The notes under the pieces are model-generated. The model did no database searches. It was not told the DNA's origin and worked only from the letters and a program-made list of their open reading frames with translations. Positions 32,708 through 64,000 of a DNA stretch of 64,000 nucleotides are shown piece after piece (within the stretch, counting starts at the first letter, position 1; every line of letters starts with the position of its first letter). Source of the stretch: Glycera tridactyla. Its lineage: Eukaryota. The DNA lies in assembly GCA_965644265.1 (NCBI GenBank), contig OZ286468.1, positions 49,910,001 to 49,974,000 on the forward strand, given 5' to 3'. The position numbers and the translations under genes are program-made.

Positions 32708-32850
32708 CTATAAGAGGTAATTATGGCGCGGAGGTGTTTCCACAGACAAGTCAACCGCCCAATCAGCTACACGCTGAATCCCGTAACATCCAATGGTATC
32801 CAACAACCAGTCTTTCGCCACAACTGTCACGTTATAGGTGCGATTGATTT
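32708..32850 (-). CDS. BRCA1: BRCA1 last exon, end of BRCT2 (INRTYNVTVVAKDWLLDTIGCY...NYLL*)
   Basis: Acceptor tttgttacag, phase 1, VVxxxWLLD motif equivalent to human VVTREWVLD; TAG at 32708. Confidence 0.92.
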
Positions 32851-35800
32851 CTGTAACAAACAAACAAACAGACAAAATCAATGCCGATAATCCTACATTG
32901 GACATAACCAGACTGTCTACTGGCTAAATGGTGCTTCATGTAATAGAAATATACCCAGGGTTGCATCCAGGATTTTCTGAAATGGGGACATTGGGCCCCT
33001 TAAATTCGAGAAAAGGGGGCATTTCTCCATAGAATGTCCCAAAATGGGTTCACTTAACATGGCAAAGTGCAAACCTGTCGTTGATTCAGGGGGCATCGTG
33101 GCCCATGATTGCCTCGAAAAGGGGCCCACACAGGAAATATGTGTGAAATGCCCCCATGCCCCTCTCTGGATGCAACCCTGTATACCTGATTAATTCAGAA
33201 AAAAAAAACAAGATCCGAGGAGCAATGAGTACAAGATACATTGGAACCTGTGAAGAGAGGCACCCCCAGATATAGACCACCTCTGACGGGACACCACATT
33301 CTCAGGGCAGGTTCTCTATTTGACAATATTCCTCTGACCAGAGACTATCTCTTCAGAGACAGCAATTCGGTGAAATTTAGGGCAGTCTCTAGTTGTAGGT
33401 TTCACAGTATGGTGCAAACTCAAGTGACTCAGTTGATTTCACTCGGACAGTGTTTCAAAAATTATCAACATAACCATAACTAGAAACATAATTCTCTATC
33501 TCTTTTCGAACTTGGCGATAAGAAATATACATCAGTACCAGTAACTGTCAAGCTATGTGGAATCTATTTCAGAGAAACCTGCAACTACTTTGAAAGTGTA
33601 ATGGCTTTGATTTTAGGCAAACCAATTATCTACGGCATCTTATCATTTCTCGTCTAACATGCAAGTCACTGTCTCAAGTGGACCGACACTCCCCCCCCCC
33701 CAAAAAAAAAACCCCTGCTAACTGAAAGCTACTTTGCATTCATACAGACTCCAGGCTTTATCTCCACTGATTCTGGGCAACTTTCATGATCTTAAATGAA
33801 AAATTATCAGCACAGAATCTTCTCTTCTTCCATAGGCATGGACTGATGCCACCAGAATCACAGAACAATCAGATCTCTTTTAATTTGAAATGAATGCAAC
33901 ACTTGAGAGACATCATGGCTCCTAGCTGTCTCAAATGAGCTTAATTTGTGTAAGAGTTCATATCATACTTACTACGCAATGTTAAGATATCCTTGTTATC
34001 ATCTTCCTCCACAAGAACAATTGGTCTCTGACTTGGATCGAACGAGAAGAGGGACGGTTCTTGAATGATGCTCGCACCACACATCTGCACAAGACCATGA
34101 ATCTCATCTGCAAACAATCATCGAAATGTAAAATAAAAGGATATCGCATCTATGTAAAGAGCAACCCCCCCCCCCCCATCAAAAAGTCTGCCATAGATGA
34201 ATAGCATCTGAAGTACAGTGAAACCTGTGATGAGACCCCTGATGAAAGACCACCTCTAATGGAAAACCACTTTTGCAGGGCAGCTTTTCTTTTTGACATA
34301 GTCAAATATATCCACGGCAGAGACCATCTATTTTGAGGAATCCGCCATTTCTATCATGGAAATGATCAATGATCTAGATCTATATTCATGAAAGTAAGAA
34401 TGCTTTCAAAGATATTGCAGTGAAATGATTCAGACATCTGACAACACCCCAAATTAAAGACTCACCAGAGATATTCAAAGAGAATTATTCATGTCTCAGC
34501 AAACTGCATGCGGCCAGCACAGGAGAGTCTTATCCCCACAGAACAGACTGTAATCAGTGATTTTAATGACAAAAACTTGTATCAACTGGGCACATTCCCA
34601 AATTATCTTTGACCACTAGTTTGGTTATTGTACCAAGGACAGTCTAGGAATGTCCTGGCTTGACTGACATTTTGATTCTTACCTTTCTTGAGATCATTGA
34701 ACTGTCCAAAGCAGCATATCTCGTAGCCAGCAAGGAGCGGTGTGGCAGCAGTTCTTGACCGGCGTGGAGCATCATATTTGCCCTTCACTGAGTCACCAGC
34801 CATCTCATAGTCCTCCTGATACATGAACAGTATTAAATATATTCATTATTGATGACATGATCAACACATTTTACATGTGCCAACTGAACTAAAGTGAGTC
34901 AACTGACCCTTCACTCGCAACCAAAACTTCCATTTCTTTCATATTACCAGAGCTCAACATTTTTTTCTTCAGCTGTCAGGCATGTGAAGTGGGATTTTCA
35001 TCTGCCCTTCTAAAATTGTCATCATTGGGCAGGAAAACAAATATTCAAAAGTTACCTACACTGATATGTGATCCGCATATTTGTGCCAGTTGGGCAGGTC
35101 TTTGCATAATGTCCTGATTAAGATTTGCTTTTTCTTGACAAGCGTGTTCTAGAGCTCTCGATATTTGAGTTCTAACTGAATCAAGCATTACATCATGGAA
35201 GCAATATTTATATTTGCATTATGAAAAAATAAAATGAGCAAAATTTAGATGTCCCCTCCCCCCAAGAAAAAAATGTTGAAGGAATCCAAATTGATGCTGA
35301 TTCACGAATGCACAGAAGCTCAAAAATGATATCTATTTCAGTAAGTAAGTAGCTATTTTGCCACATTGGAAATTGATAAACCAAAGAGAAAAGGAACGTT
35401 CATTTGTTTGCTTTTCACAGATGTGCCAAAGTCACCATATATTCCCTGGTGTGGCTGGCAAGGTTTAAATCACTGAGCAATTCACCTCATATTGTTCTGG
35501 GGTTGATCTTTTTGACTCATTATTACTGTACTGAATATGATTATTCATCCTGTAGTTTCCTCTATACTCACCTCTGGAAATCATTCAGTTACCCGATGGC
35601 CTCAATTAGTTTTATTCACATAACACTGAGCAACATATAATTTTCATGTGGTCATTGGTCTCTGGGATAAAGGAACTGCGGCTTCAGAAAAACAGGTCAA
35701 GTAATCATAGCTGCAATGCTAGCCCAAGAGATGAAGAGATGATGATTTGATTCCAAGATGATTCTATCTTGAAATCCTGCCACTCACCTCGGGGAAGATC

Positions 35801-38800
35801 TGTCCTTTCTTGAGGCAGTCGAGAATCCATTGAAAGCTGATGAGCCAACACTTCCCAGCAACAGCCTGGAAGTACTTCAAGGTACGAGAACACACCGAAG
35901 GATCACCAAAGTCTGGGTCTGAAATTGAAATGGCTCAGGGTAATTGTAGCTCATGAAAAGATTCTGATGCTAAGATTCCAAGATACCACTGATATCAAAG
36001 AAGCAGGGTATGGGTTGAGTGTAGGGACAATAATATGTGAGCTCAACAAGTAAAAGTAGGGATTCCTGTAATGAAATGTTTCTAGAATGCAAGAAGCTTG
36101 CATCACATACAAACTGCAGCAAACAAATGAGACAGAAAAATACCTATTTTTTGTAAAGTTAAAACTGGATTTGAAGGGAGCTTCTGGCTAGAAGCTTTGA
36201 AAATGAAAGGATTTGTGATACTATAAAGATGGACATAGAACCTCATTCATTGTCGACCCATCAAAGAAAATTGATAATATGATGAAATTCCTCCCAACAC
36301 CTTACAAACACAAAAGCTTGGTTCACTAACAGCATGTATTATCTGGACACCCACTGGGTTCTTTGTGTGCTACATATTCTCTTACCTGGTGGGACGATAA
36401 CATGAGTTATGCTTGGGTTGAAGCGTGGTACGACTCGACAACCAAGCATCTCCGCGAACTGAGCAACTCGAACCTGAAATGAAAATGATGTATTATGATA
36501 GCAAAGTTCTTCGCTGGCATGTAGGAATATGCATGAAGCAATCTTGAAAAGCATGTATCCAACAATATGTCCTAAGCAGCCATTGTATCAAGCAGCCACC
36601 TGCCTTAAGCAGCCACTTTTGGATATCCAGATGGGAGTTTTTTCTCACTATAATTCACCAGTCCTCAGCAGGCCACTTTTTGCCCTCCCAAGGGTGGTTG
36701 CTCAGGACGGGTTTGACTGTATTTGTTAAATGATGCTGATTTTCTCACTCTTGAGATTTCCCTCACATGAATGAAGATAAAACCTGGATATCATTGAGGG
36801 CAACTTCATCAGATATTAAGTTTCAGTATCACTGTATCACACTTCATGAAAATACCTATGGGCATGAGAGATTCAACATATATATATATAAGCATACAAT
36901 TTTGATTTTCACACCAAAATATGAATTGAAAAGAAGAGAGCTGATGTACACATGAGACTGACTCTTAACAAATGGGGAATGATGATGACAATAATCAACC
37001 TCACAGATCCTAATTACTCACGAAATGCCCGAAATACAGTTAAAAAAGTAAATAGATAGTGCCTAAAGTACATATGTAGACTTTAATTGCATGTGTGTTG
37101 ATTGTTTTTGAGAGGACCATGACATTTTTGCCATGACCATGATGAGTCAGATGAGTTCCCAACTTCTCCTGATATTATTGATTGCAAAAACTACTGGAAA
37201 CAAGAAGTGCACCTCACCTTCACTTTCCCGGATTTGATCCCAGACGTTGTGAACAACCAATTTGGACGTTTCGGGAAGTCTATATCACTGCAGATGCTCG
37301 GAGATGAAAACGGCGTTGCGGGTGATGATAACGTTTTCTGCATTTGCGGTGTTTTTTGTAGTTGAAATGTCCTCTGCTGTTGAGGTGTGGTGTTCATTTC
37401 TTGCAGGACTGACCCAGCTAGACGAGATTCCCTGATTGGAGTGTGCGCCATATTAGGCGAGACCCTGCTGAACAATCATCGAAACATAATTCATCAAACA
37501 AGATTATAGATTTCAAATTCATCGATGAAGTTTTGTAGTACCAAAATTTGATGGAAAAACCCACCTCAATACTAACTTTTCAATCAAACACGTAATATAA
37601 ATACAGTCGAACCCCCTCTAAAGACCACCTCTCTATAAAAACCACCTCTCTATAAAGACCGCCCAGAACTGCGACCGTGGTAGTACTTTCAAAAGTAAAT
37701 GACCTCTCTATAAAGACCACCTCCCTATAAAGGCCATGTTTTGATGCAACCGAAGGTGGTCTTTATAGGGAGGTTCGACTGTACAAGAAAACCACTTTGA
37801 AAGGATCCTGCCATGTGTTCTTTTAACTGCTTCGGCTGAATATAAGAGATATATCCTGGACTAGATAATTTCCTTGTACAGTGAAACCTGCAACGGGAGA
37901 CCCCCTGATGAGACCACCCTCAATGAGAGACCGCTTCTGCAGAGCAGCATTTCTATTCGACATAGTCAAATATACCTCCAACGAGAGATCACCTCTTTTT
38001 AGAGACCACTTTTTGGTGACATTTAGGGAGGTCTCTTGTCACGATATTCACTGTATGAAGTTCTGTTTTGTCGAGAATTGCCCCCGGAGTTGAACACCAG
38101 CTTTTAGCCGTTCACAAATTCAGGTAAGTTGTGAGTATATTAATAAATTCTAAGGAATGTATGCAGAGGTGTGTATGAACTGCCATAACTTCTGTCTAAA
38201 GTGTACCACGTGAAGATGTGCAGTCTCTGGTTTCTCACTCTCAAGTGAAATACTTGTTACGCAAGATGCGGTATATAACAAATTTACTCACCTTTTAGCC
38301 TTATTCAATGCAGCATTGCCAATGATCCGTGAGCTGTCAACAGATGATGTAGAGCTCATAGGATGCGTGCCTGGCTCAGTTTTAATTTGTGGTGCACCAC
38401 TCTCTCCAGTTGAACTACTTGAGCTTGTATGGGTCTCAGTACCAGTCTGTGTCCTCGATAATGGCGAGTCTCTATTCATCTGGGAGCTACTGACAGCTTT
38501 AGCTTTACCCAAATGTAAAAACTCCAACCGTGGCGTCCTGCAACTGGCTAGACTTGGATCCTCTGGATTTGCAGCTCTAGGTGGTGAACTTTCATCGATA
38601 TTTGGTGGTGTTTCCATTCTGATAGGTGGTGGGATGCGTTTTGGGGTGGTTTGTGGAAGCAGGTCTGGTGTTGGAACTGTTGGTGAAGTTTCTTTCGATC
38701 TTGGTCTCCTCGGTGCGATATCAATTGATGGTAATACTTCTTCAGGGGGTTCGCTCTCCACTTCAAATGGTGGAATTTTTTCACTGTTACTACTATCTAG

Positions 38801-41800: not shown

Positions 41801-44800
41801 ATCTAAAAGCCAAAATAATCAGTAGAGAATGTTTGTATTCTGAGAGCAAAAAGACGGAAATCCGCGGATCTGTGCAGGGTTGCATCCAGGATTTTCCGAA
41901 TTGGGGGCATTTGCCCCCTAATGTTCAAGAAAAGGGGGCATTTTTCACAAAAATGTGTTTGCTTGATATGGAGTAAGTGCAAGCTTTTTGCTCATTCAGG
42001 GGGCATTGTGGCCCCTAATTTCTCTGAAAAGAGGCCACCACTCAACAAAACGTGTGAAATGCCCCCATGCCCCCCTCTGGATGCAACCCTGTCTGTGGAA
42101 CAATCACATCCCTGTGTGCCTTTACTTTTGATACCAATCTGTAATTTCTGACGATAATAATTACGGTACACTCACATTCTTCATCTGAGTCATGAATGAT
42201 TGGTTTTCTTGGTCTCCCATAGATGTCATAATCGTCTTCCTCATCATCACTGCCTTTAGCAGAAGCTGTGGTGATCACAGTTGAATCCTTCGAACCTAAG
42301 CATTTCTCACCCTGCTCACCCCGACTGTCCTCATCTGTGAATGCAAAAGACCATATGCTACAAACACTGTTCAATACTGCATCAAACCAATTCACAAATG
42401 AACTGAAAACTATCAGTAAAGACGAAATTATTTTTCATGAAACGATCAAATTTACGGAAGGTACTGCTCATACATTTCCAAATGAACCTCATTCAGTGAA
42501 AATTTCACGGAATGTGAAATGATTAGATGAAACTATGTTTCACAATACAGGTTCAAATCCACAAGAAATCAGATGATTTTTGAAAATGTAATTTGTACAT
42601 TTCAATGGTGTATGTTTCATAAAAGCTCATTTCTTTTGAGAGTACAGCATTATTTACATTTATTTCTTCTGAAACTAGGATAAATTCCTGAATAGGGGCA
42701 TAATTCCCCTGTGTGAACAAAGAATACCTAGTGCCACTAGGAGGGCAAAAATCATCCAGTAAAAATTCAACTATGATGCATTCCTCGTCCTGACTGGGAT
42801 AGCCTTCAAAACATGGAAAAAGCTAGGAGTGGAAACATGCTCCTGCCCATGCATGTAAAATGAGTTTGAAATTGTCAAATTGATTTTGGATTTCCGGTTT
42901 TTGTGACTGAAGCCTGAGAAACCTGGAACATTCAAAGGATGACAAACACAAGCAGGAACTGTTCACTGCACCATGAAATAACAGGCCTGCCTGACGAGAG
43001 TGAATCACATAGATCTTTTATGTAGCTTGTCTTAAAAAGATTTGATAGGAGGTACAGATATGAAAAATATAAAGCTTGCCAGGGCCCATAAAATTATATG
43101 AGAGCCAGTTCATCTCAATCCAAATTCAAATAGAATATTGACAAGTTGACAACTGCCGATGGTCAGTGAACAAATCTCGAAATCTCACCCTTCCCGGTAT
43201 TTTAAACCAGATGAAACAATGAGTCACATTATGGTGGGATTTTATGTTAATCCTGATCACTGAGTACTCCAATGAACCACACCTGACAAAATGTATCACT
43301 ATCTTTGACCTCACAGAATCAAGACCCCATTTTGAAAATATGGAGAAATTTCCACACCATTTTCGCTTGCACTCTCAATTGAGCCTTTCACTCTGACAGC
43401 TGCTCTTAATATGAAACTCTTAGTTTTTTCTATAATCAAGTTTGTCATAATCTCTCATGAATGGTGACATGGAGCTTGCTTAAGTACTCAAAGCTGGCCT
43501 GCAATTAGATACTAATTGGCATCAATATATGCACAAAAAATTCAAACATCAAAATCGGCATTAATTGGCATTAAAATCAATGGAAAAAAGTCAATTTAGA
43601 ATCTCCAATCAAGGAAAAAAGGCAAAACATCAGTGAATTAGATTAACTGGTGAATGTTTAACTTCAAATTATTATATCAAGAAACAGGATAAGAAAGCAG
43701 GCCTGTCATAACACATGATGAAATGCACAGTTCCTCACCTGAGTCATCCAGATTGATGGGATGAGCTTTATCTCCCTCATCAATGTAGCCATCCTCATCA
43801 CCAGCAGCATCCCTGCTCTCCTCCTCATCATGTGCTTGCTTCCTCTTCCTTGAGGCCTCCTCTTCTTGGTCTTCTTCTGTTGTGAATATACTCTTATCAA
43901 GAGAATCAATGAGATATGGCGACGATGACTCATGAATACGTCGATATCTCCGAGATACAACTGATGACTCATGTTGTTTCCTTGACTTATGACTCTCCGA
44001 AGATGCTTGCGATGATTCACGACTTTTCTGCGAGCTGTGCTCTGGAGACAGTGGCATTATTCCTGAAATTTCTAACTCGCCACCAATCAAACTTTCGCTA
44101 TGAGCCGACTGCATCGATGATTCGATGACAGATATCTGAGAATCTCTCTGGCTTCTTCGAAGAGAAGTACTCTTAGCTTTTGAGCTTTGACTGCTTTGGC
44201 TACCTTTCTGGGAGCAAATGCTCATATGAGTCTTCAATCTGGCATGAGTCTGGCTTCCCAAAGTAGGAGATTGACCTTTGATACTTTGACTAAGTCTCTG
44301 AGAATTCAATGGCGCATGCGGAATTTTGAACATATTCTGCTGTCTGGCACACTGTGACTGAGACAATAGCTGTGACTGGCTCATAGATTTCATAGTTGGT
44401 GGAGTGGGTGGCACAACATCTGTATCATCCTCTTCCTCCTCCTCCTCCTCCTCCTCTTCTTCTTCTTCTTCTTCTTCTTCTTCTTCTTCTTCCCCCTCTT
44501 CCTCCTCTCCATCATCTTTGTCTTTATTATCATTAGCTTCCAAGTCACCATCATTATCAAGATTTATCACTCTAATATCATTAACATCAACTGTATCATC
44601 TGATCCTCTTGATATGGGCCTAGTTGCTACGGTGAAATTGGACAAAATTCTCGAATTTGCGGTTGATACACCACCTCCATGTTTACTGTCCAGAATAAGT
44701 GTTTCATCTGATGTACTAGTCCGAATCTGGCTAAAATTGTTCTGTGACTGACTGCAGTCATCATCGTCATCATTATAATCATCAGGTAGGACCGAGTCCA

Positions 44801-53800: not shown

Positions 53801-56800
53801 CAATAAAATTAAGTGATATACAGTGAAACCTGCAACGAGAGACCGCCTTAAATGTAACCAAAAGGCGGTCTCTCAAAAGAGGGGGTCTCTCATCAGAGGT
53901 ATATTTGATTAGGTCAGATAGAAAAGTTGCTCTGGAAGAGCGGTCTCCCGTCGGAGATGTTCTCTTGTGAGGGGTCTCTCATCGCAGATTTCATTTTGAC
54001 GTTATTGTTTTAGTTTGTTTTGAAGGACAGTAAAACCTGTATTCAGAATTAATAGATGAATAATCAATGAACTGACCTTGAATGTCACTGTCTTGACTTC
54101 GATCAGTAATGTGGCACTCTTCATCTTCCTCCGTCCACTTCTCCGAGGTGATGATTTCATCTGTGGAAGCCACTTTCCGGGATCTCACTTTCCGTCTCTT
54201 CACTTTCTCGATGTCCAGCGACTGTTTCCTGCTGTTCGTGACAAGGTCAAGCTGCATCTCTTCTGTCACCTTCCACTCCTGTTGTGGGTCAATATTTCTT
54301 GGATTCTTTTTATCGAGCCCATGTAATACTTTTTCTTTATCTGGTAACACTAGCAATTTCTTGCCTTTCTTCCTTCCAACTTGTGTATTTTTCATATTCT
54401 GTTCACTATTTTGGGATGTCACCTCAGTTTGATTACTCATACTGTCATTCCTCTGCAAAGTTCTTGACTTTGCACTTTTAGATTGCAACTTTGATTGTGC
54501 TTTTTCTCTAACATTCACCACTTTGCTGTCTTCTTCATAGTGCATTTCCGCTCCTGAGATTACTGGAACCTGACTGTCGTGTGTTCCTCTAGTACTCGCT
54601 CTTGGGTTACGATCGTTGCCACGCTGCCTAGTTTCCATTCTCCTGAATGGTGGGACATCTTCCATGATCTGCTCTCTTGCTTCTACTTCCATGTCCCGCA
54701 CTTGCTGACTGAACACAAATTCAAATTCTTCAGCTTCCGCAAAGTGAGCGGACATGGTATCAATTTCTTGTTGTGTTAGAGATATTTCAGCATCAGCTCC
54801 CACAGTATTCTCCTGTTCATGACCAGGAGGCACATCTTCAACCAAATCGACAGTTTCTGTGGGAAGCGTAAAATTTCCCTGAGATATGTCCGTAACTTCA
54901 AGTGTTTCATTACTTTCATCGATCTCAATGACAGGTTCAAGAATTCTCGACCCATTCTTTCCACTTATCTGTGAAGTATTCACTGAAGTGCTTTCATCAC
55001 TTTCTACCTCATAACTGCGGTCAAATACTTTGATTTTACGCTTCCTTCCTCCTTTGCGTCCTTTCTTCTTGGGTGTTCTTTGACTGGGTTTGAAAGCAAA
55101 TGGATCTTCTTCAGAGGGTGAACCTATCATGCTGCGCCTCATTTTGGCACCTTTCGGAGTTTTAACCAGTCTGCCTTTGTATTTCAGCAACATTCTCCTC
55201 TTCAGTGGCGTCTTCTGAACCCTTTTGTTGATGGTAGATGGGGCAATCATATCTTCTTCCGAAGTTGGGCCTTTCACAGAATCAGACGACAAATTGAAGA
55301 CACTCATATCCGGAGTTGGTCCTTTGACACTCACAGATGGAGGACTCCTGTTTTTGATCAAACCCACTTTTTTGTATTTCAAATTTTTGTTTCTGTTCAG
55401 TCCTAATTTAGTTTTGGTGAGTAAGAATTTTGCTCTACTTAGTGATTTTCTGACCTGGGTAGAAGTTTCTGGTTCACTCTCCTTCTGGCATGTAGGACCT
55501 ATGATTGAATCAGAGGAGATATTCACCCGGGGAGCTCTATGTGTCGAATCTTGCCCAGATTCACCTTGACAGTGAGTAGCATCAGTGTCTTGCACAGAAT
55601 AAAGTTCATGTGATACATCAACTGCAGGAGCTGGACTCTGGATCTGGGGAGATATTTCCTTGTCTGGATTACCAGTCACACCAACAGGTTCTCTTACACC
55701 CAGTTCGACCTCAGAGACCGAATCATCAATGTTATCTACCTTCCGTGTATTCCTCAAAGGTCTTTTCTTTTTTCTATTTTCATGCACTGTTTTCTTTTGG
55801 GTGGCAGATACATTTTCATTTTTTCCATCACCAATAATCTCAGCAGTTGGCGTCGCACTTACAGAACCACCAGGCTGACTGGGAGCAACAGCAGGTTTGG
55901 TTTTAGGCTGCTTTCCTGACGGGATCTCAGCATCTGGGTGCTTTGGAACAATTTTCTCGACAACAACATGCAACTTTTGTACGGTGTCCAGCGATACATA
56001 TTCGAGCATTCCTACAGGCTCGGTGCTGAATGGTTGGGAGCATGCAGCAAGGCTCCTTTGTGAGAGCAGCTCGTCTTCGCCAGGTAAGACTGGTATTTGA
56101 TTAGTACTTGGGATATGATCATTATCGGTACCTCCGGACACGCCCATCTGTTCTAACGGAGTCTCATCAACAAGATTCACATCATCCCCATTTTTTTTTC
56201 CAGTCATTGCCGGATCCCCAATAACACGATCATCAACCATTATTTCCTTATTCTCAACATCCTGTACTCTTCCTGCAGTTTCAGAAACTACATTCTCATC
56301 GGTGTCCACTAGAATTATGTTATCACGAGGATGAGGATCGATCGTCTTTCTCTTTTTGTTCTCACCCGTTTGCTTTTTGGGCTGATGCTGCTTTAGGTAG
56401 GATTTATACTGCGATGGTTGTGGGTCATCAGCAACATCTATATCGCATGACTGATGCCCTACATTGGTTTCTGTCTGATCTATGGTACATGTCATCTGTT
56501 GCCCGTTTTTCTCAACCACTCCCTGCAGATACTCATCACTATCATCCACCCAAACAAACTGACCAGGTTTCGGCAATCGTTGCATCTTTCTCAGACCATC
56601 TTCTGGAATTTTCTTCTCTACATGCTTTTTCCATGTGCCTTTCGATCCTTTTTTGGAGTACTGTTTTCCAAAGACTTTATCAACAAGTGCCTCTCTTTTG
56701 TGAATGACTGGAGTTTTGAAAAGTATACCACCGCTACTTTCTGGTGTTTTTCGAACATCTGAATGTTTCTGTGTTGATGAAGTTTCTTCCTCCATTAGTC

Positions 56801-58823
56801 TATTCTTGCTTCGTGTCCGCCTGCCACCTCTGTTCTGTGGAGGACTTACTGGAATCTCTTCATGTCCAGCAGAATGCGTGTCAATTTGGTGACTTGGATT
56901 GTCACCCGCCTCAGAATTATCTGATGGAATTTCACAATCGAGAGGTACTTTATTGTTTTCACATCTATCTTCACACTTTTCACTCTCCTCATCACTGTCA
57001 TCCATATCATCTGCACTATATGTCTTCCGTTTCCCCATCCTAACCCTTGTCTTGGATAGAACTTTCGGACGAACATTGATTCCTTTCATTTTCTGGGGAA
57101 GTATCTTCGTTTCTTGAAGACGCTTTGTGCAGTCTTCCTTTGCCTTTTGGATATAGTTTGTGCAATCTAAGATAATACTGTCAAGTTCAGCATCATTCAA
57201 AACAGGCATTTCATCTATTTCTTCACACTCGATATTGTATACTTTATCTTGTGGGTGTCGAATTTGACTCGGAGGTGTGAGACTGGTACCATCGGTGCCA
57301 AGTGTTGATGCCGAGCTTGCCAAATGCAGAGATTCAGGGCCAAGTGTCGAGGGAGTGCGAGCCTCCTGCAGCCAGCTCTGAACCTTGGTATGAGCCTTCA
57401 CCCTCGGAAGAATTTCAATCCCATCCACAGGCTCCTTCTCCACCAAATTATTCCCACCTTCTACGTAGTCCACACATTCAGCTACTCTGGTATTCTCCTT
57501 GTCTTCTTGAGATGCATTTCTCACGCGGCTGGTCCTATTCTGATGTTTCCCAATATTCGGTGCCACAATGACAGTCGTCTCAATTTTCTTTCTTGTCGTT
57601 TGTGGGATAGACTTTCTCTCTCTGTCATGACCATGATGTCCGGACTTTGCAGGAATGCCATTTTGCACTTGCCGATGTGTTTTGGAATGTTCAAGGTTAG
57701 CTGATATGTGATGTTCACCAGTTTGTCCTCCACCATCCTCACTAATCCTACGCCCCGACTTTGGATGCTTACCTTTCTTCTCTCTTAGTTCTGCATTCGG
57801 GAACGAGGAGCTGAAAATCAAATTGGTAGAATTATTGTCAGAGAATTTGGCTTGGATTGGTGGGAGTTTCATGACAGGATTATGTATGCTGTATGTTTCT
57901 ATGACAGCTGGATGTTGTCCTCTGCATGCATCACTCATAAACCCTAAACACAAGATAATGGGGATCTGCCCCCTAAAACATCAGGAAAAAGGGCATTCTT
58001 CCACAAAATCAATTGAATATGGGTTTGCACTGAAATTTCCCAAGACGCGGTTGTTCCTTACAGAGGTTGGATGGAAAACATCCTGATTTTGCAGAGTAGA
58101 ATCACTCACAAACTGCCTGTTTCATGCAACTTTTCAACAACTTTCGAAGGTATCATTTTCAAGGCCCTGCCAACAATGGGTGAAAAGGTAATATATAATT
58201 CACTATTATGGTAATCCGATACCACATTGATTAATCCAATAAAACTTTGTCCATAATACAGTGAAACCTGCGACAAGAGACCTCCCCATGAGAGACCACC
58301 TCTGACGGGAGACCACTTTTCCAGGGCAGCTTTTCTATTTGACGCAGTCAAATATACCTCTGACGAGAGACCACCTCTTTTGAGAGACCGCTTTTCGGTG
58401 GCATATAGGGCGGTCTCTCATCGCAGGTTTCACTGTAATAATGATAATCAGATATGTCAAATTCCATACTTTTTCCAGACAAAAATGGCATTTCACAAGA
58501 TTCCATAATTTTTCCACGCATAGCTGCATCCAGGATTTTTCAAAATGGGGCCAATTGGCCCCCTCCTCACTCAGAAGGGGGCCAATGGTTGTCAAAAAGG
58601 GGCCAATATCACCGAGCACCTGAACTGCCTAAAATCACTATGCTGAAAAGGAAAAAGGTCCAACTTCAGGCATCCCACCTTCGCACAATTCAGTGGCACT
58701 ATCCCCATTCCCAGTGGCATCAGTTACAAGCCCTCTTCCAGGCTCCTTGCCCTTGGGCATTTCTTCACCATTCTGGCTGGAATTGGAATTCTTGAAGAAG
58801 CAAGTGATTCTTCTCTGGGCCAT
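32708..58823 (-). CDS. BRCA1: BRCA1 orthologue, spliced model from Met 58823, ~3,992 aa. Minus-strand join: 58679-58823, 54077-57790, 53508-53603, 43739-49243, 42176-42334, 40610-40683, 38292-39697, 37218-37467, 36386-36473, 35788-35918, 34683-34815, 33973-34107, 32708-32850. May extend 5' via 60417-60471, 60940-61012, 61446-61510 and beyond the window
   Basis: Exons sum to 11,979 nt with consistent phases. Tandem BRCT (TTSG, [31 protein letters not shown]), coiled coil DTQ|YGDDLKDDVGNIMKEIAALEAKL, KVQSW and DKVFGKQYSKK, resembling human KVNEW and DKIFGKTYRKK (recalled human sequence). Confidence 0.9.
32956..33180. mobile_element. hAT-like MITE, 15-bp TIR CAGGGTTGCATCCAG, 6-bp TSD
   Basis: TSD tatacc on both sides; sister copies 41875-42091 (TSD tctgtg), 28110-28310 (TSD tctatc), degenerate 53068-53449. 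Confidence 0.85.
33973..34107 (-). CDS. BRCA1: BRCA1 BRCT2 exon (EIHGLVQMCGASIIQEP...)
   Basis: Acceptor gtttgcag, donor gtaagt, phase 1-1; matches human WMVQLCGAS. Confidence 0.92.
34683..34815 (-). CDS. BRCA1: BRCA1 BRCT linker/BRCT2 exon (EDYEMAGDSV...[14 protein letters not shown])
   Basis: Acceptor catgtatcag, donor gtaaga, phase 0-1; matches human DFEVRGD...LEICCYGPF. Confidence 0.93.
35788..35918 (-). CDS. BRCA1: BRCA1 BRCT1 exon ([26 protein letters not shown]...)
   Basis: Acceptor aatttcag, donor gtgagt, phase 1-0; matches human [23 protein letters not shown]. Confidence 0.95.
36386..36473 (-). CDS. BRCA1: BRCA1 BRCT1 exon (VRVAQFAEMLGCRVVPRFNPSITHVIVPP)
   Basis: Acceptor ttttcatttcag, donor gtaaga, phase 0-1; BRCT THVI motif. 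Confidence 0.93.
37218..37467 (-). CDS. BRCA1: BRCA1 exon with start of BRCT1 (...PKRPNWLFTTSGIKSGKVK)
   Basis: Tandem cagcag acceptor, donor gtgagg, phase 2-0; SG of the phosphate pocket. Confidence 0.9.
37879..38053. mobile_element. Tc1/mariner-pogo-like MITE (CAGTGAAACCTG TIR, TA TSD)
   Basis: TA-cagtgaaacc...ttcactg-TA; relatives at 31922-32006, 52407-52618, 53119-53277, 53821-53995, 58259-58435, 59665-59841, 59906-60055 and 62779-62955. Confidence 0.85.
38292..39697 (-). CDS. BRCA1: BRCA1 exon with PALB2-type coiled coil followed by an acidic/Ser-Pro region
   Basis: Acceptor atgatttcag, donor gtgagt, phase 0-2; overlaps track ORF 38288..39685. Confidence 0.92.
40610..40683 (-). CDS. 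BRCA1: BRCA1 small exon (DDGSSSRGMNSSAVSSMSEAVDTQ)
   Basis: Acceptor tgtttattgcag, donor gtaagc, phase 1-0; ends in TQ like the human exon preceding the coiled coil. Confidence 0.85.
42176..42334 (-). CDS. BRCA1: BRCA1 exon (EDSRGEQGEKC...IHDSDEE)
   Basis: Acceptor tttgcattcacag, donor gtgagt, phase 1-1. Confidence 0.85.
43739..49243 (-). CDS. BRCA1: BRCA1 giant exon B (5,505 nt), Ser/Gln/acidic low-complexity with SQ clusters, poly-Q and poly-E
   Basis: Acceptor atttctttcag at 49243, donor gtgagg at 43739, phase 1-1; overlaps track ORF 43677..49235. Confidence 0.92.
51853..52047. mobile_element. hAT-like MITE, perfect 15-bp TIR CAGGGCTCTACGTTG, 5-bp TSD
   Basis: TSD ggagg at 51848-51852 and 52048-52052. 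Confidence 0.85.
53508..53603 (-). CDS. BRCA1: BRCA1 exon (SQRWLVRKYADSDEESDSGQNTKLLNDSFSI)
   Basis: Acceptor ttgttttcag, donor gtacac, phase 1-1. Confidence 0.75.
54077..57790 (-). CDS. BRCA1: BRCA1 giant exon A (3,714 nt) with KVQSW and DKVFGKQY motifs and basic NLS-like clusters
   Basis: Acceptor ctcgttcccgaatgcag (phase 1; an alternative cag at 57811 gives phase 2), donor gtcagt; overlaps track ORF 53991..57953. Confidence 0.9.
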
Positions 58824-58824
58824 T
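58679..58824 (-). CDS. BRCA1: BRCA1 exon beginning (R)MAQRRITCFFK, PIP-box-like
   Basis: Acceptor tctgtgacag|A-ATG, donor ag|gtggga; phase 1 joins giant exon A. The donor is only moderately strong. Confidence 0.65.
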
Positions 58825-58899
58825 CTGTCACAGACACACTTTTTCAGCCAATCATGGATCGTTGACACAAAGAGTAGAGCAAAGAATAGTATTCACCGA

Positions 58900-59390
58900 A
58901 TGACATTCACACTTCACGCTCGATTCACCATGCTCAACTCTCGACACGAGGCGCAGAAAACCGCGAACCCCATTCCAACTGACCGTCACTAGTCGCTATT
59001 TGGCCATTAGAAATACGATCGCGAGAAACCGGGTTATCGGGTATGGGGTATCAGAAACTGCGAGAACGCTTTTGCATCGCGGCCGCTGATTGGCCGAGAG
59101 CTGCCAGTTTCGATTCCATTGGCCAATCAGAATCGAGATTACAGCAGGGCTTCGTCTCCGAACGCAGCCGGGCGATATTAGAGGAATCGCCAAAATGGCG
59201 ATCTTTCTTCTCGTTTCTCCATGATAAATACCAATGATACAGGTTTCTGGCGCGGCCCATCGCTCAATTTGCGTGAGTTTTTCTATATTCGCGTATGGCT
59301 TGGCGCCCCAGCCTTCCGATTTCGCGCCCAGTTGTCATTTATTCGCGTAAATCCCGCACTCCCGCGGCCTGGATGCAGCTCTGTCCACGC
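58900..59390 (-). promoter_or_regulatory. CpG-rich promoter-like module P2
   Basis: GATCGCGAGA 59017, CCAAT/ATTGG boxes at 59089, 59118 and 59123, CAAAATGGCG (YY1-like) 59191, TTTCGCGC (E2F) 59320; CpG density far above the window background. Confidence 0.7.
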
Positions 59391-60416
59391 CTGGAAAATT
59401 GAATTGAATTGAATTGAAAAACTTTATTTTGTTTCATCACATATCGATGGCTCAGCGCAATACTAGGCTAACTCCCTTCTTTGTCCATAGTGAGTTAGCC
59501 TAGTATTGCTTTGAGTCATCGATATACAATATGATTACCCAAGGATGGGGCTTTTCTGGTGTGGACGAATGCTATAACTAAATAAAAACAAATCAATGTA
59601 AATCTTTGAACAAAATTCTATGCTTTTTCCAGGATCCCAGGCTGGCTAGGACCACAAAGTGATACAGTAAAACCTGTCTTGGGAGACCGCCCCAAATGCC
59701 AACAAAAAGCGGTCTCTCAAGACAGGTGGTCTCCCATTGGAGGTATATTCGAATACGCCAAATAGAGAAGAGCCGATAAAGAGTGGTCTCTCATTAGAGG
59801 GTGGTCTCCCAAAAGAGGGGCTCCCAAGACAGATTTCACTGTACTTTAATTGTGCACTTTCAGTGAGTTATGACTAATCAGCCCCTTCTGTCACATTTTA
59901 AGGTACAATAAAACCTGTCTTGGGAGACTGCCCCAAATGCCAACGAAAAGTGGTCTCTCAAGACAGGTGGTCTCTCATTGGTATATTTGACTATAGAGAA
60001 GAGCCAATAAAGAGCAGTCTCCCATTAGAGGGGTCTCTCAAGACAGGTTTCACTGTACATGCTCAACCTGAGTGACGTTGCAGCGAACATTCATCTCAAG
60101 GCCCTCTCAGCTTTGATGCTGCTAAAATTGTTGACCTTACATGGACTTTTCAAGTCAGTCATTTTCAAGGACTTTTCAAGGCCAAGGGTCAACCCTGTTG
60201 GCCTGAAAAGTGTGGTCACTACTCCAAAATCATATCCAGATAGATTCATGGGTGACTGCCATGAGGTGAAGGCGATTATACCATTCACTTCAAACTTGAA
60301 TATGGTTTCCTTGAAACTCCATGATTTTTGGCAGATGACATGTTTGATACAAAACTGCATATTTGTTTGATATTTTCTTCACAAGTTCCCATTTATAGAG
60401 CTGGAATATAACATAC

Positions 60417-61510
60417 CTTATGTTTGTGTTGGTCTTCACACATGGAGCTGGTTTAGACTGTTCTGCAACATCTGAAAATCATGGACAAAAATATATCTAA
60501 TCAAAATGACCATACTCTGAACTAAAAACAATACAATCACAGAAGGCAAGAAATGAAAAGCTATTTATCAGCCGGGATGGAACCCATGTGACCTCTGACA
60601 TTGAAGATGGGACGAACGTCCCCACTCAGCCAAGATTAAGAGTGAACAAAGCCATATACTATGCACTAACACTGCATGATTGTTACTGGGGCATGCAAAG
60701 GACATGGGTCGGGATCATTCAGGAATTGCTATCTTATCTATATGCAAGGCATTGTATTGATAAGGGCTTTCCCATTGTCTTTGTCAAGAAGGATTAGGGC
60801 GATCAAATTGGTTGGGCAGAAAATCAGGAATTTCACTTGTCCACATGGAACAATTGACTTAGAAGCCTAATGACATGTCTGGATTATGATTTCATATCAA
60901 AACAAGAGTTAGTTACGCATTCTGTTAACTTTTACTTACCTTCTATATAGATTTGACATTCTCTGATTTTATTTGATGGCTGACTGTCATTAGAAGATGG
61001 TTCTTTCTTTTCCTATTGCAAAATAAAAAAGAGCTCTACATAAATTTATGAATTTTTGTACATTCTGTACAAGTTTCTTCAATAAATGAAACAGAAGTAT
61101 TCGGCCACATACATCACCCTGATATGGAATATCATACAAATTCGAGAGGACTTCCTGATTCAATTTTGCAGCACATTTCCAGTAATCTGAGTTGGCATTT
61201 CTCAAGTTGGGTATATTTCAATCACTCCCTGATCTGAAATCCAATTTTGGGACTAATAGTCGCCAGATTTGACATCTCAGACTGGTTTTCAACACAAATG
61301 CCGCCCCTCCTCCACTTCTCGATTTTGCGATCATCATCCACCCCCCTTTTTCACTGAGCATTCAGACTCCCCGACAATCTAATGAATGGAATAGCCCTAA
61401 GGGAAACTTGGTAAATAACCAGACCTACCAATTGCATTTCCTTACCTCTTTTTTCGACTTCTTTGCAGGAGTCAGAGCAGACAGAGTTGTACTGTTTGGT
61501 GTTGATGAGA
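60417..61510 (-). CDS. Three small upstream exons (61446-61510, 60940-61012, 60417-60471): SSTPNSTTLSALTPAKKSKKE|EKKEPSSNDSQPSNKIRECQIYIE|DVAEQSKPAPCVKTNTNI
   Basis: Strong splice sites (ttttgtag/gtaagg, ttttgcaatag/gtaagt, ttttcag/gtatgt). Phases 1-0, 0-1 and 1-2 chain in frame into the 58824 acceptor. No Met in this frame. Confidence 0.55.
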
Positions 61511-61659
61511 CTACAAAACAGAAAATTTTCATGTAAAAGCATTAGCATCTCAGTCTTAGTGTGAATGTATGATGCATATATTATATTTTCTGTTGGACAC
61601 AAGCGGTTGACAGATTTACAAAACATGTCGCCATATACTCCTCTAATTCACATATCTAC

Positions 61660-62330
61660 AGCAGACCCAGGGATAGTGATCGACCCCGGCCTCGCGCCAT
61701 TGTCGCATCAAACGAACGAAACCCGCGCGTTTTTTGCAGCGTGCGCCCACCGTGGCGCATTAAAATCACACAATCTGGCATGGAAACGTCTAAAACTCAC
61801 TGAAACTGGCGAAAATCCGGACCAAATCGATCAATTTGGTGATATTTCGGGGTTAAAAGAGATGTTTATTCCAATTCATCTTCGAAAATTTCAAGATGGC
61901 GCCCAAATCCCGCGCGAACTCTCGCGATCGCGAGAGTATGATGAGATTTCGGCCGGTCTAGTTCACGGACCATCCGTTAGATGTCAAATTTGTCGGTGCG
62001 CCACACTCCGCCATCTGACGGCTCGGACGGGAACCAGACTAACCAGGCACGTGATCAGCCCAAAATGGCGGGATGCTCTCGAATGCTTATACCTGATGAA
62101 TGTTTTCATCACGTTTATGGCGAAAACATCGTGCTTTCCTCAAAAACGAACATGGATTACGCAAATAGGATCACTTTTCGCGCATTTTGTACAGTCTACT
62201 GACACCCGGCTGTATTTTTAGCATCTCGATAGCGATCGAAAATCGTGAGAAACATCGTTCAAACATAACTGATTTGGGCACATAGAATCGCCGACAGGCG
62301 CATCAAACGTCACCTTGGGCGCACAAATTT
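61660..62330 (-). promoter_or_regulatory. CpG-rich promoter-like module P1 with candidate non-coding exon ending at 61801
   Basis: 20-bp palindrome 61918-61937, YY1-like motifs at 61892 and 62061, E-box CACGTG 62048, TTTCGCGC 62176, minus-strand donor ca|gtgagt at 61801. Confidence 0.65.
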
Positions 62331-64000
62331 TTTTTCCAAAATTATCTCTGCAGACCTGCCAACCTTGGAAGCAGTGAATCAGTAATCAGGAAGACCATTT
62401 AAAGTAATTTGACCCTCTTTTCAGTAATGAAATTCCTCGTTTTCAGTAAGACATCAGTAATCGTGTCGGAATCACGGGTTCGGTCCAAGAATATGATTAA
62501 TTCATATAGAACATCATGAAACTAAATAAACATGAAGAATAAGGCACGGAATGTCATCTTTTCAAGTCAAAATTAGGCTTGTCTCCATCTCTCAATGCAA
62601 GAACTGTAGCCGGTCTGTATGTGTTATCTGACAGCAAGCTGAAACCACTCATCCACACTATTTTTAGCATTCTAAAAAATTGCTTCATCACTGTTGGAAA
62701 AATTTTGACACCTTGCTTTGGTTGGCTGGCTAACATCATGTCTGTTTCTTCAATAGCTACAGGGGGCAGTACCAACAACAGTGAAACCTGCGACAAGAGA
62801 CCAACAGACAAGAGACCACCTCTGACGGGAGACCCCTTTTTCTGGGCAGCATTTTTATTTGACATAGTCAAATATACCTCCGATGAGAGACCACCTCTTA
62901 TGAGAGACCGCTTTTTGCTGACATTTAGGGCGGTCTCTCGTCGCAGGTTTCACTGCATCTCCTGCCTGATAAAAGCATGAATGTTCAGTGAAGCCAGTCT
63001 GTGTGCAGAGCGATTGATTGCAACTTCTGTGAAATGATCTTCATTACCTTCAATTTGAGACACTATAAAGTATTTAGCTACATGTATATGAAAAAGTCAA
63101 ATAAGAAACTTCACTTAACACTTCACACATCACAGAGAAATTTCACTTAATAGACAAATATGAATATAACAAATATTCCTTGACTAGAGGGGTGAGGGTG
63201 AGGGGTTGGGGGATATGGTGAGTGCATGGTGCCAGGGATGGGTGTGTTGCTGGCAAGTGGTTGTCATGGGGATGACAGGAGCCCCTTGCTCAACAGGAGC
63301 CCCTTGACTGTTTACCTATAGTTGGTTCCATTCACAGTTGGTATAGTGTCCATCGAGGTATGTCCAAATGATGCCAATGCTGTGACTTGGCACAATGCAT
63401 TAGGAAGCCACATTATGAATCTGGGATGGACTGTAGCAGGATGCAGTACCAGTCCCCTCCTAAAAGCGTAATAATTGACTACCAGGCCGTAATGGCGTAA
63501 TAGAGGGGTGAAAATCGTAATCATTATGCTTAAATTGGAATGGTTGGCAACTCTGTTACAGTTGAGACACAATACAGATGTCTACCACTAGTAGTTGATA
63601 CTCAGATTCCATGCTCTTCATCCCACAAAATCAAAGAATCAGATCAATGTGAATTGGATATGTGAAAGAGTGAATTGGTACATGATTTTTTTTATGTGCC
63701 TAAAATAGCTTTATGTAACCAATCACCTACCCGAACAATACCAAGGGTAGCAATATGCGAATTTTTCTCTGGTGACAACAAATCTTGGAAGAATATGAAA
63801 TTGTTAAAATCATTTGGCAGTGATGGGGTGAGTGGCCGAATAGTGATGAATACAGTACCAAGAACCTCTCAGAATCATATCAGGTGGTCTCATACTGGAG
63901 GTATAGGACTACAGTATAGGACAAATGGTTTCTCTCATACAGCTTCTCTGCAGGAGTCAAATCTCCATGCTTGATGCAGCTATAACATCACCAAATTCAA

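Follow-up and report, generated by a model that had tools for sequence, protein, structure and literature searches.

Two candidate CpG-island promoters in the 5' region of a BRCA1 orthologue from Glycera tridactyla

We analysed a 64,000-nt stretch of the Glycera tridactyla genome (assembly GCA_965644265.1, contig OZ286468.1, forward-strand positions 49,910,001 to 49,974,000; hereafter the window, in which all positions are counted) and found on its minus strand a BRCA1 gene that appears to be cut off at its 5' end and whose visible 5' region holds two CpG islands, P1 and P2. Our preferred reading, held at about even confidence, is a BRCA1 5' region with two independent CpG-island promoters and with its RING exons upstream of the window. 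On this reading, three mini-exons (A, B, and C) and an exon that encodes MAQRRITCFF (the MAQRR exon) would be structural equivalents of human exons 7–10, and the counterparts of human exons 2–6, for the RING and its C-terminal helix, would be expected upstream of exon A, outside the 2.5 kb still visible there. P1 and P2 would act as independent housekeeping or cell-cycle promoters inside this region, each with a CGCG/BANP-type element, a YY1-like site, and an E2F-type site, and P2 also with NF-Y boxes. Promoter activity, transcription direction, and the existence of upstream RING exons are all points that we infer.

If this ordinary reading holds, the locus is a routine 5' gene region, i.e., two common-motif CpG-island promoters in BRCA1 with the first exons outside the window. 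It would nevertheless place the vocabulary known from vertebrate housekeeping promoters (CGCG, YY1-like, and E2F) in use in Glycera tridactyla and extend the conservation of BRCA1 exon phases from human down to the small exons 7–10. Clearly less probable, and put forward only tentatively, is a natural RING-less BRCA1, either as the sole form (RING lost, gene start at P1) or as a dedicated isoform from P2 as an intronic NF-Y/E2F/CGCG promoter.

The BRCA1 gene and its 5' mini-exons

By its exon content and intron positions, the minus-strand gene is an invertebrate BRCA1 orthologue, as the original prediction had proposed. Six BRCT-coding exons (e1–e6, 32711–37475, minus strand) matched Pfam BRCT, the domain being found on two of them, and their best PDB match was human BRCA1 (E 1.9e-6 and 2e-4), with BARD1 weaker or absent, such that the tandem C-terminal BRCT domains are closest to those of BRCA1. 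All five BRCT-region introns share position and phase with human introns 16, 17, 19, 21, and 23, and many BRCA1 proteins gave collinear tblastn matches to the window. The exon–intron structure is as in human BRCA1, and this extends to a giant central exon. The gene has giant exons, one of 1320 and one of 1852 codons. The first giant exon, the exon-11 equivalent (53991–57972, minus strand), can be entered in frame at either of two acceptors, whose first bases are 57972 and 57943. Its motif AEAEEFEFVFSQQVRDMEVEA (54806–54663) also occurs in the giant exon of the closest relative fetched (E 3e-8). A word search of a protein collection with the 1320-codon exon returned no match, self-match included.

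Upstream of the giant exon on the minus strand, the well-spliced mini-exons A, B, and C sit between the two islands. Exon A (65 nt, 61446–61510; acceptor ttttgtag/T, donor GAG/gtaagg) has phase 1 in and 0 out, exon B (73 nt, 60940–61012; acceptor tgcaatag/G, donor AAG/gtaagt) ends in phase 1, and exon C (55 nt, 60417–60471; acceptor gattttcag/A, donor AAG/gtatgt) ends in phase 2. The MAQRR exon follows (58769–58824, 56 nt if internal; ATG at 58823), with a weak acceptor (gtgacag/A), a donor ATG/gtgaag, and phases 2 in and 1 out, which by phase make it the equivalent of human exon 10. A candidate mini-exon D (57 nt, 58110–58166, minus strand; acceptor ttggcag/G, donor TTT/gtgagt) links C in frame to the giant exon at 57972, leaving out the MAQRR exon.

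Joined together, A, B, and C stay open for 64 codons, in the reading phase of the MAQRR ATG (P 0.014 against shuffled exons), and they contain four out-of-frame ATGs, which is normal for coding exons and awkward in a 5'UTR. The 5' junction phases (1, 0, 1, 2, 1) equal those of human c.301, c.441, c.547, c.593, and c.670, i.e., exons 6/7 to 10/11, the human exon ends including c.593 and c.670 being as published (PMC4231409); the chance of such agreement is ~0.012, counted over four path-independent junctions. Exons A–C showed no sequence similarity to any BRCA1, and their proposed equivalence to the human exons from 7 onward is one of structure. Mini-exon B matched no solved RING chain, and the PDB matches of mini-exon C included no BRCA1 or RING chain. 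Given the open frame through A–C and the human exon 7–10 phases, the MAQRR exon is most likely internal, with RING exons expected beyond base 64000.

Two CpG islands with a common motif vocabulary

Island P2 (58801–59400) lies directly 5' of the MAQRR exon, in the intron between exons C and MAQRR, and island P1 (61601–62450) lies directly upstream of mini-exon A, 2.9 kb away, both in CpG-dense, TATA-less DNA. CpG observed/expected ratios, for which high values were used as a proxy for absent germline methylation, were 1.07–1.42 in P2 (58801–59400) and 1.15–1.80 in P1 (61601–62400), as compared to 0.53 in the whole window. The original prediction had described two CpG-rich islands (here 1.1–1.8 vs. 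0.53) with the same three motifs in the same order, and these were recovered at the positions given for them, all on the plus strand: GATCGCGAGA at 59017 and 61926, CAAAATGGCG at 59191 and 62061, and TTTCGCGC at 59320 and 62176. Its statements on splicing and frame, including a stop-containing minus-strand exon at P1, stood on re-reading of the donors, ATG, and stop, and so did its CCAAT boxes in P2, at 58848(+), 59093(−), 59122(−), 59123(+), and 59231(+).

Both islands carry a TCTCGCGAGA-type palindrome. In P1, it is a perfect 16-nt palindrome, TCTCGCGATCGCGAGA (61920–61935; self-match 61918–61937), which holds GATCGCGAGA and both CGCG-consensus halves, and in P2 it is the imperfect CGCG (BANP-type) element GATCGCGAGA (59017–59026). 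Each island has a plus-strand YY1-like site CAAAATGGCG (59191–59200 in P2, 62061–62070 in P1), with further YY1-like sites in P1 at 61893 (AAGATGGCG, plus strand) and 62016 (minus strand). The E2F-type site TTTCGCGC of P2 (59320–59327, plus strand) is ~500 nt upstream of the MAQRR ATG, across the island from it, and that of P1 (62176–62183, plus strand) is ~300 nt upstream of a candidate first exon (ex1). P2 adds an NF-Y type CCAAT cluster (59087–59127), in which a minus-strand CCAATCA ends at 59093 and ATTGG and CCAAT overlap at 59118–59127. With this CGCG, YY1-like, E2F-like, and NF-Y vocabulary, P1 and P2 look like real promoter-type CpG islands.

The three cores TCGCGAGA, AANATGGCG, and TTTSGCGC, which are literature consensus cores picked after sight of the motif words of the original prediction, fall together in one island with P ~3e-4 per island (dinucleotide-preserving shuffles). 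They occur in both islands and nowhere else in the 64 kb, and by simple arithmetic the shared motif order plus the orientation of the two oriented motifs has a chance of ~1 in 24. Generic comparison of P1 with P2 gave little: nine common 8-mers vs. 6.2 expected (P 0.17, not significant), a collinear chain of four vs. 3.0 expected (P 0.30), two shared words of at least 10 letters (P 0.07), and a best local alignment of 26 vs. 20 ± 2 in shuffles (maximum 27). Blastn within the window found no cross-match between the islands and no second copy of either. A duplicated regulatory module was accordingly set aside, as alignment, 8-mers, and blastn all lack similarity past the short motifs, and the notion of "twin modules" as related units falls with it. 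Since extended similarity is absent, we read P1 and P2 as two promoters with a common vocabulary rather than copies, their likeness reflecting an arrangement that such promoters would favour.

Two tandem copies of a MITE-like repeat (59663–60058; families D1–D4, inverted repeats I2–I12) lie between the islands and in neither promoter, with a depth of ~10^4 in the public libraries. A repeated hairpin at 59441–59525, with weak miRNA-like scores, was the sole such signal in the structured-RNA check.

Direction of transcription, RING-less alternatives, and library depth

YY1 sites of human promoters are sense-oriented and found no more than ~30 bp downstream of the start site (PMC11160661). The YY1-like site CAAAATGGCG, the one strongly oriented motif, faces the plus strand in both islands, antisense to BRCA1, and if this rule from human data applies here, the main start sites of P1 and P2 are probably antisense or divergent to BRCA1. 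A plus-strand consensus donor in P2 (GTGAGT, 59273–59278; inverted repeat I17), 82 nt after the YY1-like site, may be the end of a plus-strand first exon. Imperfect palindromes such as TATCGCGAGA still give bidirectional reporter activity in human cells (PMC6192621), and with such a palindromic CGCG element, BRCA1-sense initiation would be possible too.

No run catalogued as RNA contained this stretch. Depth was read from contigs of four public libraries (runs X1–X4) of unspecified type, in which start sites and strands are unreadable. Both islands were 30–100× deeper than flanking unique DNA. P2 was represented by a 399-nt contig (58959–59357) with a depth of 95–165 in all four libraries, vs. 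0–4 on flanking unique DNA; it had the same ends in two runs, and one or the other end recurred in the remaining two. P1 was represented by several contigs (up to six per run, 2.5–9.5% diverged), with a summed depth of 52–86 in X1 and X2 and 2–48 in X3 and X4.

The alternative that survives best, though unlikely, is a longer RING-bearing mRNA from upstream accompanied by BRCA1-sense firing of P2, with the MAQRRITCFF exon as first exon and a RING-less, PIP-box-first BRCA1 as product. Such an isoform beside a longer one, which the original prediction had offered as its second alternative, would be compatible with everything seen. P2 lies 130–200 nt upstream of the MAQRR ATG, which has a strong context (A at −3, G at +4), and the donor of this exon reaches the giant exon in frame at 57943. 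The enrichment of P2 is strong and equal across the four libraries, contigs of two of them stop at 58899–58902 on an initiator-like TCATTC, and human assays show bidirectional activity of the CGCG element (PMC6192621). However, the YY1-like orientation and the consensus donor at 59273 favour the plus strand, a short uORF with its ATG at 58856 comes before the main one, and a P2 transcript must skip the well-formed exon D to keep its frame. In addition, contigs across the MAQRR exon are unspliced, and no relative shows a comparable exon or PIP motif. Upstream RING exons and two independent promoters stay our preferred reading. The isoform, if real, would matter more, and its first residues would form a PCNA-binding PIP box.

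Somewhat less likely again is true loss of the RING, in which the gene starts at P1 with a non-coding first exon (61879–61801 region), A–B–C serve as a leader, translation begins at the MAQRR or exon D Met, P2 is a second promoter, and all isoforms lack a RING. Searches of the full 64 kb with 39 RING queries, a profile HMM, and exon peptides of the relative itself found no encoded RING. Neither a RING nor exon-6-like sequence was seen in the 6 kb upstream of the giant exon, whereas in the relative both lie within 2.9 kb, its RING exon being 2.8 kb upstream of its giant exon. As a positive control, the same searches detected the RING exon in this closest relative fetched (tblastn E 2e-18, HMM E 3.5e-16), which retains both the RING exon and an 89-nt exon-6 equivalent with human boundaries. 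Further upstream in the relative, the next called genes gave no translation under the standard code. The candidate first exon ex1 (61801–61879, minus strand) fits a gene start at P1 as well, as the CpG island with its CGCG palindrome and, ~120 nt on, a consensus minus-strand donor (TCA/gtgagt; last exon base 61801, gtgagt at 61800–61795) stand exactly where a first exon for A–B–C would be. Ex1 ends in phase 1, matching exon A, and its in-frame ATG (61879) is closed by a TAA (61855–61853) after eight codons; public-library contigs read through its donor without splicing. An annotated BRCA1-like protein of Owenia fusiformis also lacks a RING, but that model may simply be truncated. Exact look-ups of this protein and of ORFs from the window returned no record.

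Against loss, no other part of BRCA1 is as conserved as the RING, which molluscs, echinoderms, amphioxus, and the closest relative fetched all have, and most of the animal relatives found begin with it. The open frame and the out-of-frame ATGs of A–C also suit coding exons over a leader. The BARD1-binding module, a C3HC4 RING at the N-terminus flanked by helices, was not seen within the 64 kb, and the window reaches no more than 2.5 kb past exon A, with much of that being repeats. Because coding exons appear to run on upstream, past its end, the window does not establish RING loss, and the RING-less BRCA1 of the original prediction stays unproven by a stretch that ends so close to in-phase coding exons, while a relative keeps the domain.

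Decayed remnants were considered separately. A decayed RING in exons B and C (IRECQIYIE resembles ILECPICLE) was backed by neither PDB nor HMM matches, and the intron is placed differently from human. By eye, ex1 made an appealing exon-6 helix gone to decay, its TAA replacing a Glu codon, but no profile matched it, its BLOSUM scores did not exceed those of shuffles (maximum score P 0.29, top-10 mean P 0.07), and an 89-nt exon-6 equivalent is also impossible there. CYSC at 63987 as the last zinc-ligand pair was rejected, with a stop just upstream and no usable acceptor.

We consider it improbable that the islands are unrelated to BRCA1, with P1 in a repeated or highly polymorphic segment (61668 to ~63050) and the P2 depth coming from an abundant small RNA or multi-copy element: the divergent P1 contigs, two of which leave the reference exactly at 61668, the stretch 62408–63045, which behaves like dispersed repeats, and the recurring P2 contig ends at a depth far above BRCA1 exons point that way, but neither island has a second copy in the window, the motif content far exceeds composition expectation, and P1 depth differs up to 40-fold between runs where repeat depth is constant, unlike copy number (such variation could also arise if divergent haplotypes fell under the 90% cut-off). 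Neither island has an Rfam family, ORFs around and across them have no Pfam domain, and a small structured RNA in P2 was dismissed for want of an Rfam match.

Comparison with known promoters and RING-deficient BRCA1

Human BRCA1 uses two alternative first exons, of which one carries upstream AUGs. The human BRCA1/NBR2 promoter is a TATA-less, E2F-regulated, divergent CpG island with a few hundred bp between start sites (PMC2206725, PMC6789141), and P1 and P2 resemble it in being TATA-less CpG islands with E2F-type sites. They differ in being two islands 2.9 kb apart with no neighbouring gene visible in the window, and in their place: the human promoter is upstream of the RING-coding exon 2, whereas P1 and P2 would be downstream of the expected RING exons, beside the exon-7 and exon-10 equivalents. 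A second likeness is to TCTCGCGAGA BANP/ZBTB33-type CpG-island promoters, whose CGCG element drives divergent, methylation-sensitive transcription in human cells (PMC6192621, PMC2920758); P1 has the perfect palindromic consensus and P2 an imperfect variant. That element has been characterised in vertebrates, mostly in genes for ribosomal proteins and in housekeeping genes, whereas here candidate elements are seen in an invertebrate.

For a candidate P2 isoform, a parallel is LEF1 promoter 2, which is intronic and is reported to yield dnLEF-1 without an N-terminal interaction domain (PMC2965227). As a candidate intronic promoter, P2 would likewise give a product without such a domain. To our knowledge, no internal promoter of this kind is known for BRCA1, and a wild-type, promoter-encoded split of the BRCA1 RING from the remaining protein has not been described so far. 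Human BRCA1 185delAG alleles give RING-deficient proteins from downstream start codons, and the candidate RING-less BRCA1 would resemble these products in keeping the central region and BRCT domains. Those products, however, come from mutant alleles by downstream initiation rather than from a dedicated promoter or a wild-type gene; if a RING-less BRCA1 is made in Glycera tridactyla, promoter choice would uncouple scaffold functions from BARD1-dependent ubiquitin ligase activity.

Gene identity and its small 5' exons

The minus strand carries two giant open exons (57953-53991 and 49235-43677), an open piece of 471 codons from stop to stop (39703-38291, listed as a 465-aa ORF) that by eye starts with a coiled-coil-like stretch, and six small exons (37475-32711) encoding tandem BRCT domains. 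Two of these six exons gave Pfam BRCT matches, the top solved-structure matches were human BRCA1 (E 1.9e-6 and 2e-4) with BARD1 weaker or absent, and many BRCA1 proteins yielded collinear tblastn matches to the region. The five introns of this BRCT region (32711-37475) all sit at human positions and phases (introns 16, 17, 19, 21, and 23), and nothing corresponds to human introns 18, 20, and 22. The gene is a BRCA1 orthologue, as the original prediction had it. Among the human exon limits used for the intron comparison, c.4987, c.5075, and c.5278 are published (PMC4231409). Separately, the second giant exon encodes a run of ~30 Glu between Asp-rich stretches (EEEEGEEEEEEEE...DDTD; 44404-44751, minus strand).

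Upstream of the giant exons, two CpG-rich islands, P2 (58801-59400) and P1 (61601-62450), enclose the mini-exons A (61510-61446), B (61012-60940), and C (60471-60417), which are on the minus strand and have good splice sites. These mini-exons are followed by the exon encoding MAQRRITCFF, a PIP-box-like start (58824-58769, ATG 58823, weak acceptor gtgacag/A), and by exon D (58166-58110, good splice sites), both also on the minus strand. P1 holds a candidate minus-strand first exon, ex1 (ATG 61879, in-frame TAA 61855-61853, last base 61801, donor TCA/gtgagt), which is the stop-containing exon with a gtgagt donor that had been predicted there. Two routes from C stay in frame, one through the MAQRR exon to the giant-exon acceptor at 57943 and the other through exon D to the acceptor at 57972, so that MAQRRITCFF, proposed as the first in-frame Met, keeps that role on the former and loses it on the latter, where the first in-frame Met lies in D.

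Read in phase with the MAQRR ATG, A-C have no stop in any of their 64 codons (P 0.014, exons shuffled), and the same exons contain four out-of-frame ATGs. The junction phases upstream/A, A/B, B/C, C/MAQRR, and MAQRR/giant are 1, 0, 1, 2, and 1, equal to those at the ends of human exons 6, 7, 8, 9, and 10 (c.301, c.441, c.547, c.593, and c.670; PMC4231409), with a chance of ~0.012 for the four route-independent junctions. Together these two features, the open frame among out-of-frame ATGs and the human phases, favour a coding role for A-C over that of a leader. Since intron positions are kept elsewhere in the gene and in its closest fetchable homologue (hereafter, the relative), we infer from exon structure that A, B, C, and the MAQRR exon are counterparts of human exons 7-10, to which they have no sequence similarity. 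An internal promoter giving a PIP-first isoform beside the long form is unlikely. Structural polymorphism is seen in the intron that follows the MAQRR exon (58640-58660): one library contig is longer than the window by ~120 bases between 58640 and 58659, and a 6-base indel lies between 58659 and 58808.

The RING exon in relatives and the search for it in the window

One BRCT exon was searched against 1.84 billion representatives. Most full-length relatives begin with a RING (NLECPICL...), including the molluscs Lottia, Haliotis, Argopecten, and Batillaria, amphioxus, sea urchin, and crinoid. In the annelid Owenia fusiformis, the BRCA1-like protein as annotated (2206-2210 aa; P0027/P0158, CAH1790277.1, CAH1790276.1) starts without one, as do several other long relatives (P0082, P0090, P0123, and P0044); these may be truncated gene models or real losses.

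At 62% identity, the closest match was an ORF from a 2-Mb contig in an ENA assembly. Followed upstream along this contig (stretches L001 to L003), the gene is organised as in the window, again with two giant exons. Common to the giant exons of both genes is the acidic motif AEAEE[FY]..VFSQQ[IV]RDM (E 3e-8), seen in the first giant exon here as AEAEEFEFVFSQQVRDMEVEA (54663-54806, minus strand) versus AEAEEYDLVFSQQIRDMQEEA in the relative (L003:8245-8388). This motif and, near it, GSPSEEDPFAF versus GSPSSTDPYAF are the only detectable similarity between window and relative outside the BRCT region, and they may mark a binding site. In the relative, a single 149-codon ORF (P0001) covers the counterparts of the third and fourth BRCT exons, which means that one more intron is either absent or in frame. 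The relative's BRCA1 5' introns contain copies of an ORF-bearing repeat (L003:1877-2287 and L003:2023-2112; ..PLGTNFSEMLIEIQT.. and MANISQTTFSSVFSSMKVFEFRL..), where the assembly gene caller reads through three in-frame stop codons; some called genes on this contig therefore do not translate with the standard code.

In the relative, a clear RING exon (tblastn E 2e-18, HMM E 3.5e-16) precedes the first giant exon by ~2.8 kb; it is bounded as by human introns 2 and 5 and followed by an 89-nt exon-6 equivalent of human length and phases. Searched with these queries, with the profile, and with peptides from the relative itself, the 64-kb window gave no match, so a RING is also lacking from the 6 kb that precede the giant exon. 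Because the window ends 2.5 kb beyond exon A, in a stretch that is mostly P1 and repeats, this absence does not show loss. The proposal that the islands drive a RING-less BRCA1 was not supported. A true loss from the gene, to which the empty searches and the RING-less Owenia model would correspond, is improbable, somewhat more so than the PIP-first isoform. The more likely situation, and our main reading, is that the RING exons lie beyond the window and that P1 and P2 are two intragenic CpG-island promoters, a reading to which we give about an even chance.

Two promoter-like islands

Both regions are true CpG islands, with CpG observed/expected ratios of 1.07-1.42 (58801-59400) and 1.15-1.80 (61601-62400) versus 0.53 for the whole window. 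The three words said to be common to them are present on the + strand of each, namely GATCGCGAGA at 59017 (P2) and 61926 (P1), CAAAATGGCG, a YY1-like site, at 59191 and 62061, and TTTCGCGC at 59320 and 62176. The CCAAT boxes reported for P2 are also present (58848, 59093(-), 59122(-), 59123, and 59231). In P1, GATCGCGAGA lies within a perfect 16-nt palindrome, TCTCGCGATCGCGAGA (61920-61935). A 218-codon + strand ORF spanning P1 (61565-62221) has no Pfam match, is absent from the protein collection, and is probably a by-product of few stop codons in CpG-rich DNA.

Tests of kinship spoke against twin modules. In a factor-blind comparison, the islands had nine exact 8-mers in common versus 6.2 expected (P 0.17), their longest collinear chain was 4 versus 3.0 expected (P 0.30), and two common words had at least 10 letters (P 0.07); the best local alignment scored 26 versus 20 +/- 2 in shuffles, and blastn found neither a cross-match nor a further copy of either island inside the window. 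Lacking alignment and cross-match, neither was copied from the other. A second test, with dinucleotide-preserving shuffles, used literature cores for the CGCG element (TCGCGAGA), the YY1 site (AANATGGCG), and the E2F site (TTTSGCGC). Within the 64 kb these cores are confined to P1 and P2, and finding all three in one island has a chance of ~3e-4 per island and identical order and orientation ~1 in 24, figures that are generous as the cores were picked post hoc, after the original prediction was read. Both islands look like genuine promoter-type DNA with one common vocabulary; the promoter-motif observation is real, and P1 and P2 are promoter-like, not twins by descent.

Among public runs, none recorded as RNA contained this stretch. 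Four small public libraries from one study, of unspecified type and available as contigs only, were mapped on 57401-63400. Unique flanking DNA had a depth of 0-4 and exons A-C had zero coverage. Over P2 there was a single contig of 99% identity (58959-59357), whose depth was 95-165 in each of the four runs. P1 was covered by several contigs 2.5-9.5% diverged; their summed depth was 52-86 in one pair of runs and 2-48 in the remaining pair, a difference that haplotypes below the 90% identity cut-off could mimic. Contigs cross the donors at 61800 and 58769 unspliced. This pattern suggests enrichment of open or promoter chromatin, a better fit than mRNA or copy number.

A MITE-like family with terminal inverted repeats (TACAGTAAAACCTGTCTTGGGAGACC...) is scattered in the BRCA1 introns, with two tandem copies between the islands (59663-60058), others at 58200-58440 and 62800-62960 and, by translations, near 33200-33450, 34150-34350, and 37700-38100; its depth of ~10^4, equal in all four runs, implies thousands of copies. 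Just right of P2, an ~85-nt hairpin (59441-59525, 37-nt arms 89% complementary) with raised depth (230-340) and miRNA-family scores far below gathering thresholds is probably another small repeat. The idea that P1 and P2 are a repeat or small RNA unrelated to BRCA1 is the least probable of all, and very unlikely.

Orientation relative to known promoters

In both islands, CAAAATGGCG is oriented to the + strand and so runs antisense to BRCA1, and P2 has a consensus + strand donor at 59273, 82 nt after it; P1 further contains a YY1-like site in minus orientation (62016) and, at 61800, a consensus donor for the minus strand. Given this orientation and donor, the common motif order may be the arrangement typical of + strand starts, and the main direction of the intragenic promoters may be antisense to BRCA1. 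BRCA1-sense starts at both islands are possible. Among promoter motifs, only YY1 is strongly tied to one orientation; in human PRO-cap data it lies in sense orientation within ~30 bp downstream of the start site (PMC11160661), and the CGCG element, which is palindromic, gives divergent transcription in human cells, as do its imperfect variants (PMC6192621).
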